This document shows, piece by piece, positions 19,503 to 33,000 of a stretch of 64,000 nt of DNA. The translations under genes were made by a program, and so were the position numbers. Where the stretch lies: positions 2,790,001-2,854,000 of the forward strand of contig OZ218953.1 of the NCBI GenBank assembly GCA_965112735.1, given 5' to 3'. Source of the stretch: Phaeosaccion multiseriatum. Lineage: Eukaryota; Protista; Ochrophyta, other classes. The first letter of the stretch is position 1, and every line of letters begins with the position of its first letter. The notes beneath the pieces are model-generated. The model saw only the letters and a program-made list of their open reading frames with translations, searched no databases and was not told the DNA's origin.

Positions 19503-22500
19503 ATGCTCGGGGGAAGTAGAGCAAAGGCAGCTACAGCGGTAGGAGAGAGGAGTGGTCACTTAAAATTCTATGTGTCGTCTACCAAGAGCCGAAAGCGGCC
19601 GTACAGCAGCGCAGGCCAAAGGTGGGGCTTTGGACGTGGTTTGTCCCCACGCTTGCTCTCGTCAAGGGGACTATCCCTTTGCCTGGTGCTTGGTTGGCAC
19701 CTCGCGACCTCCTCGTCCCTGAGGTATGAAGAGGACGCGGGTTTGTGGAGGAGGGCACACGTTTGCAGGGCAGTGGCACCTCACCACTGTGGAACACATT
19801 CTTTCTCCTCACACGTACAGCATGACCCCGACACCGAGTTCCCGATCCAGCTCTTCAACAGCGGCGATGCCGTCATCATCATCATCAGTCCCAGTCTCAA
19901 CTGCCTCGCCATCAGCATCAAGGACTGAGGCTTTTCCTCGTGGAGAGGGGCCACTGTCCAGCGTAGAAAACAATCTGCGCTTCCACCCGCCAACCTTACC
20001 CGGAGACGAGGCTGGTGATGAAGAAAGTGCACCAACGTTCAAGGAGGTAAACACCAGGCACGGTGACACGTATAGACGTGTGCTTCCGCTAGCTTGTACA
20101 CCATTGAGACTTCTGTCAACCCCATGACTTGTGTCCCTCTGTCTCCATGACCACTGCTGCACCGAAGGCCCTTGCTGCAACTGTTGAGGGGACCCCGGCT
20201 TTTACTCTCCTAGCGTACAGAATGTCAATTCAGTACCTAGCTACCTGCCTACCTTCCTACGTACCTAGCCACCTGCCTACCTAGCTGTCCCTTCACAAGT
20301 CCTGACGCTCCTTTGCCTTTGCCCGCTCTTGCGCTTCGTCCACAGCTGTCCTCCAAGCTGGGACTGAGGCACTATACGGCGGAGGGGCAGGAGGGAGGCA
20401 GCAGTGTCTGTACCAGTGAGGGAGGCGACCCACTGCCCTCCTCTTCGGCCCCCCTCATCTTCCTGGTGCGCCACGGCCAAACCGCCTTGAACAAGGAGGG
20501 CAGGTACGTCAGTCAGTGCGACGCGTGCATAAGCAGATAGAAATGGACAATAGTAATCGTCAAACCTGCGTCTCTGCCTCTGTCTGCCATCTGTTGCCAT
20601 CCTGTGGCCTCAGGATCCAGGGTCGAGGCCTCAACCCCATGCTCAACGCTCAGGGGCGCTCGCAGGGGCTGGCGCTGGGAGAGTTTCTCAAATCGGTACG
20701 GGCTTCCATCGGATCTTCCTCTCACCTCGCGCTTGCAAGCCCTTTCCACCTCGCCTCACCCCTTTCGATCCAAAGCCCCCTCTCAACCCCTACCCAAGCG
20801 TACCCTCACACCTCATATACCCCAAGCCCCCCTCTTACTCTCTCTTTCGCCTCTCTATCCTTCACAACCCATGCCCTCTCTTCCTTAGCCTCGTCCCTCC
20901 TGTCTGCAGTTACCTCCTCACTCTCCCCAAGCTGCATCGTCTCACTGTGGTAAGCCTCATCCCCATCCCCACCCCCCCAACCCCGCCCTCCACTCCACCC
21001 CACGCCAATCAATCAGGTGAAGTTCGACTCTGTGACGAGCAGCTCGCTGCATAGAGCCCACGAGACGGCTCAGCTCATTGTGTCTAGGAGCCTCACTTCG
21101 TCCGATATGCACGTCGAGCAGGACGCAGGTGAGAGGAGGGAGAGGAAGCAGCAGGGGAAACAGGCGCAGCAGGGGTAGCCTCTCAACTGCTGACTGTTGG
21201 CTCTCTTGGCCTCGGCCGGCAAGTCCCTCGGGCAGGTCAATCGGTACATATTTTGTGGGGTTTGTGGCCCCTGCTTTGCGTGCTTTGCAGTGCCTTGGTG
21301 GCTTAGACTCCTCGCTCCAACTCGTCCTTCCTTTCTTCCTTCCTTTCTTCCTTCCTTCCTTCCTTCCTTCCTTCCTTCCTTCCTTCTTTCCTTCCTTCCT
21401 TCCTTCCTTCCTTCCTTCCTTCCTTCCTTCCTTCCTTCCCTCCCCCAGGGCTGGATGAGCTTTCGTGGGGTGTGATGGAGGGACAGCTGAAGGACTGCGA
21501 GCCAGGCCTATCCCTGCTCCAGGGGGTGCTGGAGGAGTGGAAGGAAGGGAATGTGGACAAAGCAATCGAGAAAGGCGAGAGTCCTGTGGAGGTGAGGAGG
21601 GAGGATGAGATTACGCGAGAATGATGTAGTACGATGTGTATCACGTTGTCTCTCCGTCTTGTGGGTGGGCGGTTCAACTCTGCTAACCGACAGCACACAC
21701 ACACACACGCACACACACACACACACACACATGCATACACACACACACCTTCACACCCATGCCGCTCCCGTGTGGCTCTCTCCCTCCCTCCGGTCTTTCC
21801 TTGCCTGGCCGGTGCTTGGGCGCAGGTGTTGGCGAGGGGTCAAGAGGCGCTCCGTAGGATCGTCGCCAGGGGGCATCGCACCAACTTGGTTGTGTCTCAC
21901 GGCCGCACCATCCGAGTCCTCCTGGCCGGCCTGCCGGGGCGTCATCTCGTTGGTGCGTTTGTCTCCGTCCCCATCCCCATCCCTAAGAAAAGCATGTGTA
22001 TGCACACCGCACCCGCCCCCCTCCTCACTACCCCACTACACTACACAACCCTACCTTACCCTACCCTACCCTACCCTACCCTACCCTACCCTACCCTACA
22101 CTACACAACCCTACCTTACCCTACCCTACACTACACAACCCTACCTTACCCTACCCTACCCTACCCTACCCTACCCTACCCTACCCTCCCCCACCCTACC
22201 CTACCCTACACTACACAACCCTACCTTACCCTACCCTACCCTACCCTACCCTACACTACACAACCCTACCTTACCCTACCCTACCCTACCCTACCCTACC
22301 CTACACTACACAACGCCACCTTACCCTACCCTACCCTACCCTACCCTACCCTACCCTACCCTCCCCCACCCTGCCCTTACCCTAACCCCACCTTACCCAA
22401 CCCCACTCTATCCTACCAATGGCAGTCATGAAGCATCTGGGAGCGGTGCCGAACTGCGGCCTTTATGTGCTGCAGTGGAACGAGGAGAAGCAAATCTTCG

Positions 22501-22544
22501 ACCTCCTGCGCCCTCCGGGAGACGTGATCGACGACTTGGAGTGA
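19503..22544 (+). CDS. Histidine phosphatase (phosphoglycerate mutase-like) family protein
   Basis: IFLVRHGQTALN..|IQG..LNAQGRSQ, SSSLHRAHETA, GLDELSWGVMEG, GESP, VVSHGRTIR, VPNCG. N-terminal exons 19503-19723 and 19821-20046 splice in frame. Confidence 0.88.
22045..22400. repeat. (CCCTA)n pentanucleotide satellite with interspersed ACACTACACAA units
   Basis: Read directly from the last intron of the histidine phosphatase gene. Confidence 0.9.
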
Positions 22545-22825
22545 AGTGGAAAGAACGTCCGAACGAACGAACCGGCTGGTTGGTTCGCTGATCTAGAGCC
22601 TTTGGCCGTTCTTCTCCTAGCTGAGACTCGCATTCACAGTTTTTTTTTGAGGATGTTCAGGATATACTCAGGGATTATAGCGTCAGTGAACGGTCGCTTT
22701 AGCGTCAGTGAACCGTCGCTGTCTGCTGTGACTCCGATGCTTGTCTCGTCTTACTCTAGTCTAGATAGAGAGAAGGGGACACGAAGTTGGTGTAGAGGAT
22801 AATGAGTGGGTGACTTTGATACGGT

Positions 22826-23745: not shown

Positions 23746-26010
23746 TCAAAAGTATATTGCGCCCGCCGTTCGGCGAGCCATCCAAACGCCAAACTCGTCT
23801 CGATTGTAATTGCACACCGCCCGGGCATGGGTCTTGAAGCAGGGCACCACCCCATAAGCCCTCAGCAGCCTCAGGCGGGGCAGGATGGTCCTCTTGACGC
23901 TGTTACCCTTGAGCAGTCCCGGCAGGCCGAGCCCCACCTCTCTGTGTGTTGCGCCCTCCATCTCGCGCGTAAGCAAGCGCCCCAAGGCCTGCAGTTTGGA
24001 CAGGCCCGTACTGGCGATCTTCCTTGCTGCGGGCGGGTGCTGCAGAAGCGCGCCCCACTCCTCCGCAGAAAGCCCCATCTCTCCCTGGAACCACTCTCTC
24101 TTGGCCTCCAGCGCAGCCTCAGGGCTCTTCTTCCGCTGCGTCTCGCACCACGCCGCAAAGGCCGCCTTGGAGTATTTGAACACGGGTGTGGCGTGCCTGT
24201 CAAAGTCCGGCTGGACGCACCACGCGCTATCCCGTAACAGCGCAAGGCGGGGGCGGAGGGTCTTCTCTACGCTGTACTGCACGAGGCGAGGAAGGGACAG
24301 CCCCACCTTCTTCGGTGTCGCACCCTCCATCTCGTTCAATATCAGATCAGCGGTGGTCTGGAGGGAGCGTAGGCTGGCGGTCTCGAGCCGATACGCCCAG
24401 TAGCCGCGGTGATTGACCATCCCTTCCCACTCGTCCCTTGACAGGCCGAATTCTGCCATGAACCATTCTCTCTTCTCCTCCAGAGTGGCTCTTCTCTGAA
24501 CCCTTATGGGGGGCTCTCCCAGAGACGCTAGCCACGTGGTAAAGTGCGCTCTTCCAAAGGTGCACACGGGCTTTGCATACTCGGCAAAGTCCGGGCGGGC
24601 CACGCCATAGGCCCGGAGAACCCCCAGTCGGGGTCGGATAGACTTGTCTACACTGCCATGCAGCAACCGGGGCAACGCCAACCCCACCGTCCTCGGAGTG
24701 GCCCCCTCCATACTCTCCATCAGCACGGAGGCCACCGCCCGGATCTTGGGCAGAGTCGTCTTGTGCAGCGCCGCCGCACTGGCCCGGTGGTGGCAGTGCT
24801 CATCCCAATCCCGGTCGTCCAAGCCAAGCTCCTCCGTGAAAAACACCTTCTTCTCACGCAGCACGGCCTCCGGGCTCCTCCCCTCCTTGTGCCTCTCTCG
24901 CCAGGCGGCGAACTGTGCGCTGGTGTGCCGGCACACGACACGGGCATGCTCCCTGAAATTCAGTTTCACCCCCTGGCGCCTCAATAGCTCCATTCGAGGC
25001 TTGACGGTGGCCCGCAAGCTCGAGCGGGCCAATCGAGGGAGCAGCAGCCCCACCTCCCGGGGCGTTGCTCCCTCAAACTCCGAGAGAAGCAGCTTGCTCA
25101 GAGCTTGCATCTTGTCCACGCTCAGCCGCCTCAGGACCTCCCCGTGCTGTCTGTGCCCCGAGAGAGCCTCCCACTCTGCCTCTGTCAGGCCCAGCTTGTG
25201 CGTGAACCACTCGTGTTTCTCTGCCCCCGCCCGGTCTTTGCGCTGCTCCAGACACCAGGCTCGGAAATCTCTCTCCGAGGAGGTGCACAGCACGTGTGCG
25301 TGGTCGGGAAACTGTGGTGTGACGAGGACCAGCTCGCGCAGCAGCTTACAGCGGCGCGTGAGGGTCTTGTCGATGCTGAAGCGCGACTCCAGCAAGCTCG
25401 GCAACGCCAGCCCCACCTCCCTCGGCGTGGCACCGTCCATCTCCCTCTCCAGAAACGAGGCCATCTGCTGCATCTTGTGCAGCCTGGCTCTCCGCAAAGC
25501 CCCCCCGCTTGGCTCCTGGTGTCCCTCCGTTCCGCCGTCGTCATCGCCCAGCATTAACAAACCCTCCCACTCCTCCTGCGTCAGCCCAAGGTCTCGCATG
25601 AACCACTCGCGCTTCTTCTCCATGCTGCCTTTCCGCTTGGCACCGCTATTGACTCTCTTCTGGCCCTTGCTGGCAGATGGCCCTTGCCGTCGAGCACCAC
25701 CCCCAGTACTTGCAGCAGCAGGAACAGTAGCAGCAGAGCTGGGACTTTCCGCGGATATTGGACTACCGGCCCACAAGCAACTGCTGCTTCGACTAACGCT
25801 CGTGCCACCCATGCTGTCCCTCCCACGCTTTCGGCGCGCCCTATTACCACCATCTGGGGTGATACTGCGGTCTTCATCCCTACCAGATCGAGGGCCGACA
25901 GCTGTAGCCCGTGGGGCAACGGTAAAGCTCACAGAGTCCCAATTAAAGCAAAATAAAACCGGGGGGAGGAGGAAGGAGAGTCCTACCAATGAAGACGCAG
26001 GAGCCCGCAT
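23746..26010 (-). CDS. Intronless protein with 5 tandem ~120-130-aa modules (mTERF-like), probably plastid-targeted
   Basis: Uninterrupted ORF (open to 26382). Likely start M125 at 26010 (MRAPASSLVGLSFLLPPVLFCFNWDSVSF). Five copies of KxxWFxxxLGLxxxEW...EGATPREVGLxLPxL..S...PRLxLLR..F..HA..VC......F..W. Confidence 0.85.
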   Translation of the reverse strand: MRAPASSLVGLSFLLPPVLFCFNWDSVSFTVAPRATAVGPRSGRDEDRSITPDGGNRARRKRGRDSMGGTSVSRSSSCLWAGSPISAESPSSAATVPAAASTGGGARRQGPSASKGQKRVNSGAKRKGSMEKKREWFMRDLGLTQEEWEGLLMLGDDDGGTEGHQEPSGGALRRARLHKMQQMASFLEREMDGATPREVGLALPSLLESRFSIDKTLTRRCKLLRELVLVTPQFPDHAHVLCTSSERDFRAWCLEQRKDRAGAEKHEWFTHKLGLTEAEWEALSGHRQHGEVLRRLSVDKMQALSKLLLSEFEGATPREVGLLLPRLARSSLRATVKPRMELLRRQGVKLNFREHARVVCRHTSAQFAAWRERHKEGRSPEAVLREKKVFFTEELGLDDRDWDEHCHHRASAAALHKTTLPKIRAVASVLMESMEGATPRTVGLALPRLLHGSVDKSIRPRLGVLRAYGVARPDFAEYAKPVCTFGRAHFTTWLASLGEPPIRVQRRATLEEKREWFMAEFGLSRDEWEGMVNHRGYWAYRLETASLRSLQTTADLILNEMEGATPKKVGLSLPRLVQYSVEKTLRPRLALLRDSAWCVQPDFDRHATPVFKYSKAAFAAWCETQRKKSPEAALEAKREWFQGEMGLSAEEWGALLQHPPAARKIASTGLSKLQALGRLLTREMEGATHREVGLGLPGLLKGNSVKRTILPRLRLLRAYGVVPCFKTHARAVCNYNRDEFGVWMARRTAGAIYF

Positions 26011-26248
26011 CTTTCCCTCCCCCTTCCCAGCACTACTCCCACCTGCGTCCAAGTAAGAAAGTAAAGAGGATGATGAGGTGGGAGGGTTTGGTGAGGTCAG
26101 CTGGGAGGGAGAGAAGCGGGAGAGAGGGGAGGAAAGGAAAGGAAGCGGATTTGAAGGGGGATCAACGGGGGGGGGGGGGGATAGGCCTAAAAGTAAAAGC
26201 GCGCCAAGGCAAAAGGAACAAAACAGAACTCTCTCCACCCTTCCTATC

Positions 26249-28228
26249 ATGTCCTCAGGTCCTTCGACCTGTGTGCTTCTGGCATGGTGTTTGTACTGGT
26301 GCGCCTTGCCTACTGCGCTGGGCTTCTGCAGTCCTCTGAGCAGCAATGGACTGGTATCCTCCAGCCGCCGCTCCACAGCCATGTGAGAATCATGTAGTGG
26401 CTCCCTTTAAAAGCACGCAACAGGAGAAATTTCTGTGTGCATGTTCCACAGTCATGGTAGTGATTCGCTATCTACGTGCCTCCCTTACAGCAGCAGATGT
26501 GATGGCTGCCTCTTCTGACTTCTGAAAACCCTCGCCCCCCTCCCTCCCTCCACCCTATTACCATCAGGCACGCAGAAGGAGCGCTGCGCACCAACCCCTT
26601 GGGGAGCAGCGATATCGTGGTCCCGGAGGTATGCCTGGGGACCATGACCTGGGGACAGCAGAACTCAGAGGAAGAGGTGAGGCAAAGGTGGACGTTGCTT
26701 GTTCTTTGAGCAGTGAATGCCCCAGGCCGCTCCTTCTCCTCATCCCTCCCCTCCCTCCCTCCCTCCCTTGCATGGCCCCTCTCGGGACTACGGACTCTCT
26801 CCAATCCCACAGGCGGTGGAGCAACTGGATTACGCCATGGAGAGGGGCCTCAACTTTTTTGACACCGCAGAGATTTATCCGGGTAAGTGTCCAATGTGTG
26901 TGAGAGGGAGCCTCACCGCCTTGACCCACTCTGACTTTCCTTCCCCCTGTCCTTTCGTACATTGCGCGTAGTGCCACCGCGGAAAGAAACCCAGGGACAT
27001 ACGGAAGACTTCATGGGGCGATGGTTAGCAAAGCAGGCAAGTGCGAGCAGCAGCATCAACCGAAACCAGCTCACGTTTTCGCCCTAATCGTCGTGTGCAA
27101 CTTAAACACACCTTGCCTCTCTCGATCCCGAACCCCGCTGCTCCACCCCAACAGGATAGGTCCAAGGTGACAATAGCGTCGAAGGTAACGGGCTACATTG
27201 GAATGCCCTCCTTCAACTACTGCTACGAGCGCCGCCCCGGCTTCGACCCCGCCAAGCCGCCTGAGGTGGAGATGTCCGATCGAAAGTCCTTTCTGAACGC
27301 GTGCGAAGGGAGTCTGCAGCGGCTCCAGACGGACTACATTGACCTCTATCAGATTCATTGGCCTGCTCGGTACTCCGCCCTCTTCGACCAGGTGCGTGCC
27401 TGTCTTGCGAGTACCGGAGCAGCACCAACCAAACGCGACGCTCCGCTCATTCCTTGTCACTCACTCACTTCCTCTCATTCCCTTCCTTCCCTCTCACTCC
27501 ATCTCCCTCTCTTCTTCTTCTTCTTCTTGCAGCCCTCTTACGATTACGACAAGGAGCGGGAGGGCATGACTTCCTTCGACGAGCAGGTGGCTGCCATGGG
27601 AGAGCTTCATGCGCAGGGCAAGATCAAGGCATGGGGCGTGTCTAACGAGAACGCCTACGGGGTGGCCATGATGTCGGAGGCAGCCAAGCGGCTCGGTGTG
27701 CCGCCCCCCGTGTCCATCCAGAACGACTACAGCCTCGTGCAGCGCCAGTTCGAGGACACGGGCACCGCAGAGGCCTGCTCCGCGCTTCACTGCAACCTCG
27801 GCCTCCTCGCGTACGGGGCGATGGCAGGGGGCTTCTTGAGCGGCAAGTACCTCCCTTCCTCTGGAAAGAAGGTCGGCGAAGGGAAGAGAGGGCGCCACGA
27901 TCTGTACCCCCAATTCCAGCCTCGCTACTACAACGAAGCGTCCACGGAAGCCTGCATCCAGTACGCAGAGCTAGCGGCGGAGCTGGGCATTAGCACGGCG
28001 CAGCTTGCCTTGGCGTGGACGGGGGCGACCAATCCCTTCGTGGCGTCCACCATCATCGGCGCCACCTCCATAGAGCAGCTCAAGGAGAACATTGACGCCT
28101 TTTCCGTCAAGCTGGAGCCGGAGGTGCTGCAGAAGATCGATGCCATCCACGCGCAGAACAGGCGGCCTTGCCAGACCACCCCCAAGGGCCGGGCTGTATC
28201 TAAACCAATCGCCTTCGGCACCGATTAA
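26249..28228 (+). CDS. Aldo-keto reductase, Tas-like, probably plastid-targeted
   Basis: LGSSDIVVPEVCLGTMTWG, GLNFFDTAEIYP|VPP, TIASKV, SLQRLQTDYIDLYQIHWP, GKIKAWGVSNE, SIQNDYSL, GFLSGKY, STIIGATSIEQLKENI. N-terminal signal-like peptide ending TALGF. Confidence 0.93.
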
Positions 28229-28448
28229 ATTTTAAAAATTTCCTTTCATTGTGTTGTTTGCTCTTCTTGGGACCTACTTACTCAGAGTATGTACAACGCT
28301 TCAGACAAAGCCACACGAAGAGGAGGAGCGCGTGACGCATGTATCGATTTTTCATGATTGGAAACTCAAACGCAAACCTCCTCGCCTGCTCCTTGTCGAT
28401 CATCATCATTGGGGATCGGTTGTTTCTCGCCTACTGCCGCAGCAGCAG

Positions 28449-29867
28449 CTACTGCCGCAGCAGCAGGCGCTCAAGCCACTCTGAGTACCTCTTATGGGTA
28501 AACTCGCACACCGCCGGTACGTGCTCCTCCAAGCTCGGCTCAATGCCCTCCCGCCACAGACCCTGTAGCCTGGGGCGTATGGTGCCTTCCACACTCATGC
28601 CTCCTCGTATCAGCTGAGGCAGCTTCAGCCCCACCTCCCTCGCATCTGCCCCGGGCACCTCCTCGAGCAGCATCCTTACTAGGTGCTGCAGTTTGGGAAG
28701 GCTGACGGACTGGAGTCGCTTCCACCTGCTCTCGTCTCGGACCATGGCTTCCCATTCTGCCTCCGACACGCCGAGCTGCTGCACAAACCACACCCGCTTC
28801 TCCTCTACCCAGACCGACGGGCAGAAGACCAGATTCTCCACCCAGCGGTCCCAGTTCTTTTTGGAAAGAGTGCAAATGGCCGAGGCGTGCTCGGAAAAGT
28901 CTGGCGTGAAGCCATTGTCCCGGAGCTGCTGCAGCCTTGGGATGATGGTGCCATCAATGCTATAGCCCGCCACCAAGCGCGGAAGCTCCAGCCCTAATTG
29001 AGCAGTGTTGTCCACCCCGGTCATCTCCTCCATGAGGAGCTTGGCCATGGCCTGCATCTTGGGCAACTTGGTGCTCGTGATGCGTTTGCCGCTCGTCTCT
29101 TCATTGACCAGGCGCTGCCAGTCCTCCGGTGACACACCCAGCTCCTCCACAAAAAAAACTCTCTTGTGCTCCACCCGCATCTCGGGAGTGTCGAGCTGCT
29201 TCACCAGCCAGCGCACGAACGCACCATCCGTCGCCCCGCACACTGCCTTGACGTGGTCCTTAAACACGGGCTTGATACCCTTCTCCCTCAACATTTCCAG
29301 ACGCGGCAAGACGGCCCGCTTGATGCTGGCCCGGAAAAGATTGGGAATCTCCACTCCCACCGCTCTCGATGTCGCCCCCTCCATCCCCTCCATCAACACT
29401 GAGGCGAGCGCCTTCATCTTGGGCAGCTTTGCTCGTTTCAGCCTCTTCCACTTCTTCTCGTCCTTCACAAGACGGTTCCAGTCTGTCTTCGTCAAGCCCA
29501 TTTGATCCACCAACCAAGCCGCCTTCGCATCATCTTCCTTCGCCTCTTTCTCCTCGTCTGTCTCAACAACTAAAAACACACCCTTCTTTTCCTGTACCCG
29601 AAGTGGCCGCTTCCCTCCTGCAGCAGCAGTAACAATCACGCCCTCCTGCTTCTCCTCTTCCTCCTCGTCATCCCCCTTGCCTCCCGTCAAATACGCCGCT
29701 GCCCCAGCACCGCCCACCCCCAGCCGGCCAGCTTGCCTCCTGCTACTCCAGCGCATCTCCGTGCCGCGCGAGCGAAGTCCCCCCTGGAAGGCCAGGACAG
29801 GAGAGGGTGACATCTCCACCAGCCTCACCCCCAGGCTCATCATCATGACCACTCGGCTTCGCTTCAT
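28449..29867 (-). CDS. Intronless paralog with 3 tandem ~120-aa modules (mTERF-like), possibly plastid-targeted
   Basis: Uninterrupted ORF (open to 29966). Candidate start MKRSRVVMMMSLGVRLVEMSPSPVLAF. Three modules with the same consensus as 23746-26010, starting at about 29525, 29165 and 28799. Confidence 0.85.
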   Translation of the reverse strand: MKRSRVVMMMSLGVRLVEMSPSPVLAFQGGLRSRGTEMRWSSRRQAGRLGVGGAGAAAYLTGGKGDDEEEEEKQEGVIVTAAAGGKRPLRVQEKKGVFLVVETDEEKEAKEDDAKAAWLVDQMGLTKTDWNRLVKDEKKWKRLKRAKLPKMKALASVLMEGMEGATSRAVGVEIPNLFRASIKRAVLPRLEMLREKGIKPVFKDHVKAVCGATDGAFVRWLVKQLDTPEMRVEHKRVFFVEELGVSPEDWQRLVNEETSGKRITSTKLPKMQAMAKLLMEEMTGVDNTAQLGLELPRLVAGYSIDGTIIPRLQQLRDNGFTPDFSEHASAICTLSKKNWDRWVENLVFCPSVWVEEKRVWFVQQLGVSEAEWEAMVRDESRWKRLQSVSLPKLQHLVRMLLEEVPGADAREVGLKLPQLIRGGMSVEGTIRPRLQGLWREGIEPSLEEHVPAVCEFTHKRYSEWLERLLLRQ

Positions 29868-30068
29868 GCTTGCTTCGCCGTGACAAGAGGACACACATGA
29901 AGGAATGAAAGAGGAACAAACCATCTGGTGCCATCCATCCCCCTCCTTCACGTCGGCAGCTGCCATCGAGCTGCCAGAAAATCAAACGACCGAGGGAGGA
30001 CAGCAATGGAGATTGGGCAATGGAGCAGGTAGTCAGGACTGTACGATGGACGGCATAGAAGCCCACCG

Positions 30069-33000
30069 ATGCAAGAGGGAGACGAGGAGGGGGGGGAGAG
30101 GGATTTCCCCGCGCCCCCCGCTCTTCAGGGATCAGGTGGCAGCAAGACAGTTCATCCTTGGGGGGCCGATCCTGCTGCCGAAGCCATTCGATTTCTGAAC
30201 GGTGGGGATGAAGAGGAAGTCAGATACAGCGCGACGTGGACTTGTGATGGGGATGTCAAGGAGCCGGAGGGTGAAGGAGAAGGAGGAGGAGCAGATCGCT
30301 TTGGCGGGCAGGAGAGTGGCAACGACGAGAAGAAGCAAGACAAGAAGACGGCAGACGATAACCGCCGCCTGCGGCTTGTGCTCGCTGACATGCAGCACCA
30401 GCTGCAGCAGCGAGAAGAGGAAAACCGATTCCTCAGAGAGAAAGTGACGACATTGGTCGATGTCATCAGAGGCAATGACATTGCTGCGATTCCGGCAACT
30501 TTCACGTCTTCCTCTCCTCTTGCTGATGGAGAAAACGTTTCCTCGGCTCTCTCCACGGCCGTCGGTGGGCAAACCCCTCTCCATCTCTCCCTAAGGAAGG
30601 AGCTGCAGCAGCGAGAGCTTCACCGCACGAGTAGCGGCGCCGACATTGCCCTCAAGCTGCCCACCCATCTCCTCATCAGCAAAGACGCGATACAGCTACA
30701 TGGCATCGTCGGCCAGGGCAGCTTTGGACAAGTATGGAAGGCCTCGTGCCGGGGCGCCACCGTGGCCGTGAAGATGTTTATCATTCATGACGAGAAGGAC
30801 GTTGTGCACGAGATTCTTCTCATGGAGAAGGTCCGCGGGGCGCCACACGTGCTCGAGTTTGAGGGCTGTGTGATCGAGCAGAGTGATCCTTACAAGAGAC
30901 CACAAGTGGCGGTGGTGTCCAAGTTTATGGCCAATGGATCCCTGCGAGACGTGCTCATCGACAGGACCAAGGCCACCTACCGCCACTCCGTGCCCCTGCC
31001 TACCTTGCTCAAGATGGTGATGCAGGCGGCAGAAGGGGTTCGGCAGCTGCACAAGAGGGGTATCATACACCGTGATCTCGCCAGTCGCAATCGTGAGTCA
31101 ATATCCACCCATGATCATTTCTTTGTTGCTGTACGTACGTCGCCCCCCCCACCCTGCCTTCTGAACGCACTTGTCAACCTTCCCTCTCCTGCCTTGCGGT
31201 GCCTGGTGCCTTGCCTTACGTTACGCTGACGCTGACGCTGCCTTGTGCTGTGCTTGGTCTACACAGTCTTGCTCGACGAGCACTTGAACTGCTGTGTGGC
31301 CGACTACGGCATGGCTCGCATCAAACACGCCTACCGAGAAGAGACTTGGGCAAGCGGAGGAGGAGGAGGAGGAGGAGGAGGAGGAGGAGGAGGTGGTAGA
31401 GGTGGAGGCGGGGGCAGCGGAAGCATAAAGGTGTGGTCTGACTGGGGACTTACTTGGAGCTGCCCCGTCTGCTCTCCTGTGCCACTTTGCCCTGACGTAT
31501 GTGAATCCTTCCCTGACCCTCTTTCCCCCCACCACTCCCACTACGCTCTCTTCCAGGACAATACGGCAACGCCTTTCGGGCCAGTGAAGTGGGAGGCACC
31601 CGGTTAGTGCTCCTTTGTCGCCCCTTCCTCCCTCCCTCCCCCCTTCCCTCCCTCTCTCCCTCCCTCCCTCCCTCCCTCCCTCCCTCCCTCCCTCCCTCCC
31701 TCCCTCCCTCCCACCCTCCCTCCCTCCCTCCCTCCCTCCCCCTCTCCCTCCTCCCTCACTGAGCGTGTGCGTGTGCGCATTGGGATTCCCTGCCCAACAA
31801 GTCACGCCCTTCGCGTCCTCCTCTCTCGCTTGTTCCCTGGTCTCGGCCTCTGACTTGTCCTTCTGTCTTCTTCGCTGCACCCACAGAGAGTCTCCGACAG
31901 AAGGAATACTCTGAAGCGACGGATGCCTTCAGGTGAGTGAGTTCCTCCTCCTTTGTGTAAGAGGGATTGCACCATCAAGGGCCGTCCGCTGCCTTACTCC
32001 TTCCCCTCTCCTTCTCCCTATCCCCACACCTCCCTTAAGTCTTCATTCTATCTATCTTACACCTCTCTCTCTCTCTCTCAAACTCTTGTTCCCAATCTCT
32101 CCCTCTTGTTTTCTCCGCTTCTTTTATCCCTCCTCCGCCTCCCTCTGCTCAGCTTTGGAGTGGTGCTGTACGAGGTCTTTTGTCGTCGCGAGCCGTGGGA
32201 GGGTCTGGGGCTCTCCTTCGTGTCGTACAAGGTCATTAACGGCGAGCGCATGCTCATTCCCCCTCCCACAGACTCTGTAGCGGGTGAGTTGGAATTTGAG
32301 CTCGTGGGGGGGGGTCTATCTCTCTACGTTAGGCAGAGGTGCTGAGGTAGTGCCTGTCTACTGTTTGGGGCAGACTCTGCAGAGGAAGTGGGCGGGCGCC
32401 TCATTGTGTGTCATCCTCGCTTGACGAGACAGACGCAAGGACGGAGTCCAAATGATAGAGAAGGGCTTGAGGAGCGTGCATTCGGGCAAGCGAGGATCCA
32501 CCCCCCGCCCCTCTTTCCCACCTCTCTTTCACTCCACAACCTGACCGACTGCCTCTTCATCACCCATGGAACAACACACGACCAGGCGAGCTCATGCTCG
32601 CATGCTGGAATGGGAACCCAACCAGGAGGCCCAAGTTCGGGGAGATACACGACGCGCTCCGTGCCAGACACGACGAGGTTAGTGTGCGAGGCCCACTGAG
32701 ACCCACTGAGACCCATTGAGACCGATTGAGGCCTACTGTGACCCACTGAGGCCTACTGAGGCCTCCGACCTTGAGTCTGGTGGACCTTGGGCCCAAGCAG
32801 AACGGGCTTCATATCGTGATGATGATTTGAACTTTCTCTCTCTTTGACAAACAGATTCTCGATGAGCAGCGAGAAGCCAAAGCCTCGGTGCGTACTGTCT
32901 CTCAGTTGTGCCATGGCACGAAGCTGCTCAAGCTGCCGTACCACAGCGGTGGCGGTGGCGTGACTGGTGGAGGCGTGGCCACGACAGGTGGGGCTGCCGC

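Follow-up and report, generated by a model that had tools for sequence, protein, structure and literature searches.

Tandem mTERF-type modules in two neighboring genes

We analyzed a 64,000-nucleotide stretch of the ochrophyte alga Phaeosaccion multiseriatum (contig OZ218953.1, positions 2,790,001 to 2,854,000; hereafter the window), focusing on two open reading frames (ORFs), A and B, that lie on the minus strand on either side of an aldo/keto reductase (AKR) gene and carry five and three copies, respectively, of a module of about 120 amino acids (Table 1). An initial annotation of the window had recognized the modules and the intervening AKR gene by inspection, and both ORFs are present at the positions it assigned to them. 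With module boundaries set at the recurring K[RK].[WF][FL] start, the modules of A and B are 116 to 132 amino acids long, averaging about 121 amino acids for three motifs, and each array is an uninterrupted open frame. An alignment of all eight modules contains 11 invariant columns and agrees with the consensus proposed in the initial annotation. The array of B aligns to that of A in three registers (BLASTP E values of 3e-76, 7e-66, and 1e-56), far above chance. Pairwise identity among the eight copies is only 30 to 43% at the protein level, on which ground a DNA minisatellite was dismissed; as judged from the alignment, and as had been proposed, this is an old, protein-level repeat.

Both ORFs exceed the Pfam cut-off for the mTERF family (PF02536; 23.1 bits), A with 30.2 bits (E = 2.8e-07) and B with 35.6 bits (E = 6.5e-09) in three stretches. 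The same Pfam scan of A and B at E ≤ 1 identifies neither PPR nor any other helical-repeat family, and besides mTERF it returns three chance-level matches to non-repeat families, in B only; a PPR- or OPR-like protein was dismissed, as such models give no match. A word-seeded homologue search with the whole of B found nothing at E ≤ 1e-3. A profile built from the eight modules was searched against 1.84 billion representative proteins and matched 92 of them at E ≤ 1e-3. Eight of these reached E ≤ 1e-10 but no match reached E ≤ 1e-30, indicating that the source organism's own proteins are absent from the collection and that close relatives are rare. The ten best outside matches (P0001 to P0010; module-profile E values of 1.6e-23 to 1.2e-9) are all mTERF proteins by Pfam, with E values of 1e-29 to 1e-73. 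Ten outside matches were looked up, and the six that carry organism names all come from ochrophytes: Choristocarpus, Phaeothamnion (twice), Chrysoparadoxa, Cyclotella, and Ectocarpus. P0008 in turn matches the solved chain of human MTERFD1 (PDB 3m66_A; E = 4e-6), providing an indirect link between the modules and a solved mTERF protein.

Two results weigh against membership in this family. Single modules match the Pfam mTERF profile weakly (five of the eight at E ≤ 1, the best at 0.0013), and the other three modules of A and B have no match at that threshold. Further, sequence searches of the PDB with B alone and with the eight-module profile returned chance-level matches and no mTERF chain. 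Four of the five single-module matches fall on positions 219 to 304 of the 314-position Pfam profile, and the fifth falls on positions 17 to 52. The initial annotation had put forward a new repeat family. Since both ORFs pass the mTERF cut-off and the module profile retrieves mTERF proteins, that proposal was dismissed; by homology, A and B are divergent members of the known mTERF family with an unusual layout.

mTERF motifs are three-helix units that stack into a left-handed superhelix, as seen in the solved human MTERF structures. When the mTERF motif pattern is laid over the array, each module aligns as three consecutive motifs averaging about 40 amino acids, with the P.LL..S signature clear only in the second. 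Split by eye, the motifs are roughly 32, 40, and 49 amino acids long. As aligned, the first motif reads KR.WF..ELG-LS..EW..L and has lost the P.LL..S signature, the second reads L.KMQALA.LL.EEMEG-ATPREVGL.L, and the third reads P.L...S.E.TI.PRL..LR..G-..P.F..HA..VC......F..W. In this last motif, an aromatic F..W helix occupies the place of the usual P.LL..S element. The EGATPREVGL loop, which the initial annotation had assigned to no known repeat family, falls, in the alignment, on the glycine turn and second helix of canonical mTERF motifs; the stretch EMEGATPREVGL lies on the ordinary '..g.s..elr..v' turn and helix and, by this alignment, is a well-conserved form of a canonical mTERF feature rather than a foreign loop.

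The relationship of the module to ordinary mTERF domains was examined by comparing a profile of 44 good modules from this genome with 33 aligned outside mTERF proteins, each with a single end piece near the C terminus. The best hhalign placement falls on the C-terminal third of these proteins (template columns 318 to 430 of 438; 110 columns, score 120.7, E = 1.3e-18) and takes in the whole module, including F..W, whereas interior placements score 62 and 59 (E = 4e-9) and cover module positions 1 to 81 or 2 to 100, without the end piece. The end piece is matched once in 62 of the 92 outside proteins, two or three times in 14, and not at all in 16. Where it is matched once, the match ends within 30 amino acids of the C terminus in 36 proteins and within 60 amino acids in 51. 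Because the best placement is on the C-terminal third and end-piece matches lie near protein C termini, the unit corresponds to the last three mTERF motifs plus the terminal aromatic piece. The initial annotation had noted a likeness to the last mTERF motifs and their cap and had suggested that a capped unit of about three motifs became the repeating block, and both ideas are upheld by these placements. Profile comparison thus identifies the super-repeat of about 120 amino acids as three mTERF motifs derived from the ordinary ochrophyte C-terminal end piece.

The two proteins share with ordinary mTERF proteins (PF02536; human MTERF1 to MTERF4, plant mTERF1 to mTERF35, and Chlamydomonas MOC1) a common motif grammar, helix-G-helix-P.LL..S.E..L.P[KR], and the general character of a basic helical-repeat protein with a putative organelle-type presequence. 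They differ in layout: in an ordinary mTERF protein, a single run of motifs closes with a single C-terminal end piece, whereas A and B repeat the three-motif end piece itself, in five and three copies (up to eight in paralogues), with nothing else after the putative presequence. The motifs are also longer (about 40 amino acids on average), the first lacks P.LL..S, and single modules are barely seen by Pfam. PPR, OPR, HPR, and TALE proteins are comparable in idea only, as tandem helical units of variable copy number, with PPR, OPR, and HPR proteins also directed to organelles; their unit spans 34 to 38 amino acids, whereas the unit here spans about 120, matches no such model at E ≤ 1, and is not known to follow a recognition code.

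The best outside match is CAM9431374.1 of the brown alga Choristocarpus tenellus (P0001; 538 amino acids; E = 1.6e-23). Its three end pieces close at residues 262, 395, and 530, and its second and third units are about 134 amino acids long, with three motifs each, and finish in ...PR...L..VGI.PSF.DHW......E..F.RW. It differs from A and B in that its first unit is a longer, ordinary motif run and in having at most three units; these units keep the canonical P.L...S, and the module profile matches only the second half of each. P0001, with its period of about 134 amino acids, is also the only one of the 14 multi-end-piece proteins among the 92 matches that has a regular period. Multi-part mTERF proteins of diatom-like organisms (P0002 to P0010, P0013, and P0028; about 1000 to 1250 amino acids) contain at least two end-piece-like elements per chain, but in these a long ordinary domain precedes one or two short capped units and further degenerate motifs, and there is no homogeneous array of equal modules. 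With two or three end pieces in 14 of the 92 outside matches, internal "caps" are not unique to this genome. No description of tandem arrays of mTERF end pieces came up in searches of the literature on stramenopile, diatom, or brown-alga/Ectocarpus mTERF proteins; PMC13126933 treats Archaeplastida mTERFs.

The module family and its coding signature

The module profile matches the 67.1-Mb, 22-contig assembly 48 times at E ≤ 0.01. Applied to stop-to-stop frames, hmmsearch finds 12 ORFs, with 8, 7, 5, 5, 5, 3, 3, 3, 3, 1, 1, and 1 modules, and seven of the 12 lie on the contig of A and B. Copy number in this genome therefore ranges from one to eight modules per ORF, as the initial annotation had anticipated in calling it variable. 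Arrays in which the last end piece could be located all finish on a module end, with a tail of 7 to 28 amino acids in six of eight and of about 100 amino acids in two of eight. The Pfam mTERF cut-off is reached by seven family ORFs and missed by five, and a six-frame Pfam search of the genome detects ordinary mTERF genes on contigs C1, C3, C7, and C11 and one family member only. Conversely, two ordinary mTERF loci give only weak, partial matches to the module. At one locus (L039, G000:C1:3310463-3314099), adjacent ORFs of 911 and 984 amino acids match mTERF at up to 135 bits and the module profile weakly; these ORFs are canonical mTERF genes of this genome. At a locus of the module family (L034, G000:C4:1534710-1537198), overlapping open frames of 749 and 475 amino acids, with three modules each, are probably the two parts of a single six-module gene interrupted by a frameshift or short intron.

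After the second modules of the C2 and C6 genes, both truncated, were set aside, the remaining 42 of the 44 modules gave a star-like, nearly unresolved tree: its terminal branches measure about one change per site, and support falls below 80 on 27 of 39 inner branches. Position-by-position orthology is seen only between the C2 and C6 genes; the 42-module tree shows neither recent expansion within a gene nor A and B as closest relatives. Its star-like shape and long end branches indicate that the arrays are old and have been kept open since.

GC content at third codon positions (GC3) is 0.75 to 0.82 in all eight modules of A and B and 0.825 in the AKR exon. Open frames, core residues kept despite branches of about one change per site, this AKR-like GC3, and contigs of four sequencing runs that reproduce both arrays with zero differences together argue that A and B are real nuclear genes under constraint. 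That they are unexpressed relics, either pseudogenes or chance open frames in GC-rich DNA, is extremely improbable, given open frames of 886 and 510 codons, eight modules that keep 11 invariant and many further conserved positions at 30 to 43% identity, a module GC3 resembling that of the neighboring exon, and 44 good modules in 12 ORFs, all of them open. Two observations nevertheless count against the genes and for such relics. Codons 1 to 256 of A have a GC3 of about 0.5 throughout, compared with 0.75 to 0.82 in the modules, so that the N-terminal part of A is without a coding signature. RNA evidence is likewise lacking: the four sequencing runs come from one sample and study, with none on record as RNA, and their contigs over 24100 to 30099 show even coverage, no joints, and no spliced AKR, indicating that the runs are DNA-like and silent on transcription. 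The relic reading can also draw on a 470-amino-acid open frame antisense to A, which shows that local GC-rich DNA gives long open frames. This frame (24644 to 26056, plus strand) has GC contents by codon position of 0.52, 0.63, and 0.73 and no homology evidence, and it is taken to result from the codon bias of the opposite strand.

GC3 also helps to place the gene starts. In B, it is 0.52 over codons 1 to 33 and 0.75 over codons 34 to 100, and this step after codon 33 points to a start at Met34 (29865 to 29867), from which the product is probably 472 amino acids long. The end coordinate given in the initial annotation, 29867, corresponds to this Met34. The 5' end of A is uncertain, because codons 1 to 256 lack coding-type GC3 and because a homopolymer upstream of Met125 differs in length by one base, at 26167, in one run; Met125 (26008 to 26010) is a candidate for the real start.

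The AKR frame runs through an un-AKR-like stretch, SLSLHLPLFFFFFLQ, which is probably an unspliced intron. Run contigs break and differ most in the interval from 27300 to 28200, which suggests paralogous copies of the AKR region elsewhere. Just downstream of A, three overlapping plus-strand frames (21605 to 22591) cross simple-sequence DNA, a tandem repeat that yields PYPTL/TLPYP peptides and a (CA)n-like stretch reading HTHTHT. Directly upstream of B, a plus-strand ORF (30069 to 31229) contains protein-kinase-like motifs (HRDLASRN), recognized by eye only, and the next ORF beyond it (31221 to 31880, minus strand) reads through a peptide repeat of a 10-letter type.

Table 1. Features of the A and B locus (positions in the window)
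Feature	Position	Strand	Description
ORF A	23746-26382	minus	878 aa from first ATG; low-complexity N-terminal region, then five modules; divergent mTERF-family protein
A candidate signal-peptide-like stretch MRAPASSLVGLSFLLPPVLFC	25948-26010	minus	Putative; Met125 start, then Phe146
A module 1	25219-25614	minus	aa 257-388; 11-aa insertion in first variable loop
A module 2	24853-25218	minus	aa 389-510
A module 3	24475-24852	minus	aa 511-636
A module 4	24103-24474	minus	aa 637-760; Pfam mTERF E 0.0013, profile positions 222-291/314, best among single modules
A module 5	23749-24102	minus	aa 761-878; array stops ~10 aa past F..W end piece
AKR gene	27041-28228	plus	PF00248, E 2.3e-46; between A and B
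ORF B	28449-29966	minus	505 aa from first ATG; putative presequence, acidic stretch, three modules; divergent mTERF-family protein
B candidate signal peptide MKRSRVVMMMSLGVRLVEMSPSPVLA	29790-29867	minus	Putative; Met34-Ala59, then Phe60 and R/S/G-rich stretch
B module 1	29166-29525	minus	aa 148-267; Pfam profile positions 225-302/314
B module 2	28800-29165	minus	aa 268-389; Pfam profile positions 219-298/314
B module 3	28452-28799	minus	aa 390-505; Pfam profile positions 219-304/314; protein stops ~7 aa past F..W

Continuous solenoid or jointed chain

The initial annotation had pictured the proteins as capped beads on a string. The aligned modules agree with a capped unit; the separateness of the beads is less easily reconciled with the profile comparisons, in which B aligns end to end with a nine-motif mTERF domain. 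An alignment of this kind with an ordinary solenoid had been named in the initial annotation as a result that would refute its picture, and for B it is obtained at the level of sequence profiles. Twenty-one three-module rows, with B first, align with canonical mTERF proteins over 319 columns (query 2 to 340 of 345, template 97 to 429 of 438, E = 1e-24), and 31 two-module rows align with canonical domains over 216 columns (query 1 to 228, template 115 to 340 of 351, E = 3.5e-24). In these alignments, the internal end piece and linker sit on an ordinary interior motif, with 'F..W' on '.vl.ls' and 'E.KR.WF' on 'nL..Ki..L'. Across 28 junctions, the distance from the end-piece Trp to the first aromatic of the next module has a median of 18 amino acids (range 8 to 35, with 22 of 28 within 15 to 25), and the junctions are charged rather than Gly/Ser-rich linkers. 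In both size and alignment, the array of B corresponds to a single nine-motif domain; A has 15 motifs.

In the opposing arrangement, each module of about 120 amino acids would be an autonomous, capped mini-mTERF domain in a jointed chain, reading its own stretch of nucleic acid. We regard this as unlikely, though a serious contender, as the junctions are short and fairly constant in length and align as a regular, if altered, mTERF motif within canonical domains, and as the whole B array matches one ordinary domain in both length and alignment. Several observations nonetheless pull toward the jointed chain and away from a continuous solenoid. A terminal-type F..W is kept in every module, and the module is best placed on the C-terminal third of ordinary domains. 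The core aromatics are the same in first, last, and single modules as in inner ones, so that the conserved hydrophobics look self-contained. Single-module ORFs exist, two of which (L035, 285 amino acids; L038, 362 amino acids) have no other mTERF match, suggesting that a module can stand alone. The Atlas model of P0001, the brown-alga three-unit protein, has a predicted template modeling score (pTM) of 0.39 and matches ordinary mTERF models over residues 28 to 266 and 42 to 268, ending at about the first end piece (residue 262); this is a hint that the protein forms distinct bodies and not a single rigid solenoid. Moreover, alignment to a repeat domain is to be expected of any series of mTERF-like motifs. 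Weighing these alignments and models, we consider a continuous solenoid the likelier form.

Predicted targeting, function, and significance

From Met125, A reads MRAPASSLVGLSFLLPPVLFC followed by FNWD, and from Met34, B reads MKRSRVVMMMSLGVRLVEMSPSPVLA followed by FQGG; both ORFs thus have presequence-like N termini, as the initial annotation had reported. A Met, a hydrophobic stretch, and a Phe are found in 9 of the 12 family ORFs by eye (a script flagged 6), with a small residue before the Phe in 7 of those 9. Light-harvesting complex (LHC) proteins, for which this genome holds 46 matches, served as a positive control: their N termini bear ASAF-type motifs in four loci, with MKTACIAAMATLGCASAFVAP in three (...LGCASAFVAP...) and ...SGVSGFMVP in the fourth. 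A fifth LHC locus reads ...GGASAFMAPS without a clear start, and the wrong frame was taken for three of the eight loci. The family N termini resemble those of the LHC proteins and fit an ASAFAP-type bipartite plastid signal, a rule given in PMC4329603. The N terminus of B, in particular, may be an ASAFAP-like bipartite plastid presequence. Plastid targeting is a tentative call, made by eye against the LHC positive control. The LHC genes themselves include large tandem arrays of near-identical copies with equal scores (G000:C9:474910-521083 and C15:1683723-1700707); on C9 they lie about 4.5 kb apart in two opposed blocks.

mTERF proteins have a major but poorly understood role in regulating gene expression in organelles, and to our knowledge almost nothing is known of those of complex-plastid algae. 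The arrays of A and B are basic, with isoelectric points (pI) of 9.7 and 9.3, respectively, and the pI exceeds 8 in 34 of 44 modules. Nucleic-acid binding by the arrays may be read from this one property, their basic pI of 9.3 to 9.7. It would be in keeping with the family as described in PMC4005652 and PMC7826268, namely, nucleic-acid binders with degenerate helical repeats of about 30 amino acids that act in mitochondria or chloroplasts. The same background also feeds a different view, in which A and B are mTERF-type proteins that act elsewhere or otherwise, either entering mitochondria or working as protein scaffolds in place of binding nucleic acid. Members of the family are found in mitochondria as well as chloroplasts (PMC4005652), and direct contact between an mTERF protein and mRNA is still unproven according to a 2026 paper (PMC13126933). 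We judge this view distinctly improbable, because the arrays are basic and the N termini are signal-peptide-like and then continue with Phe, as in the LHC proteins of this genome. A hydrophobic stretch followed by Phe is untypical of mitochondrial presequences.

Taken together, A and B are fairly likely to be genuine nuclear genes encoding divergent mTERF proteins, composed of a presequence and nothing but tandem end-piece copies (five and three), that act as nucleic-acid binders in the plastid. Such proteins probably arose by tandem duplication of the three-motif unit long ago, followed by duplication of whole genes to give about 12 ORFs with one to eight units. If expressed, the products would enter the complex plastid by means of a signal peptide and a Phe-initiated transit peptide. 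There, the 9 motifs of B or 15 motifs of A would stack into a basic alpha-helical solenoid, for which a continuous form is likelier than a flexibly jointed one and which may bind plastid DNA or RNA and act in organelle gene expression like other mTERF proteins.

A bolder proposal, which we consider improbable, is that the three-motif module is an autonomous reader and that the proteins of one to eight modules form a lineage-specific combinatorial toolkit. It is just as speculative that each module in such a toolkit would recognize one set word in plastid DNA or RNA by way of hypervariable positions at about 20 to 27, 64 to 67, and 98 to 103. Were this so, the length of the target would follow from copy number and its sequence from module order, in an mTERF counterpart of the PPR or TALE codes at the level of the super-repeat, and independently reading modules could be used as parts for designed organelle nucleic-acid binders. 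If the modules are not independent readers, the family would be a lineage-specific expansion of mainly annotation value, in which Pfam alone misses 5 of 12 members. For the mTERF family, the arrays show that copying of a defined end unit of three motifs can extend the domain, here to proteins with anywhere from 3 to 24 motifs. These proteins offer a natural series for asking how motif number relates to target length and whether a cap ends the solenoid or is stacked through.

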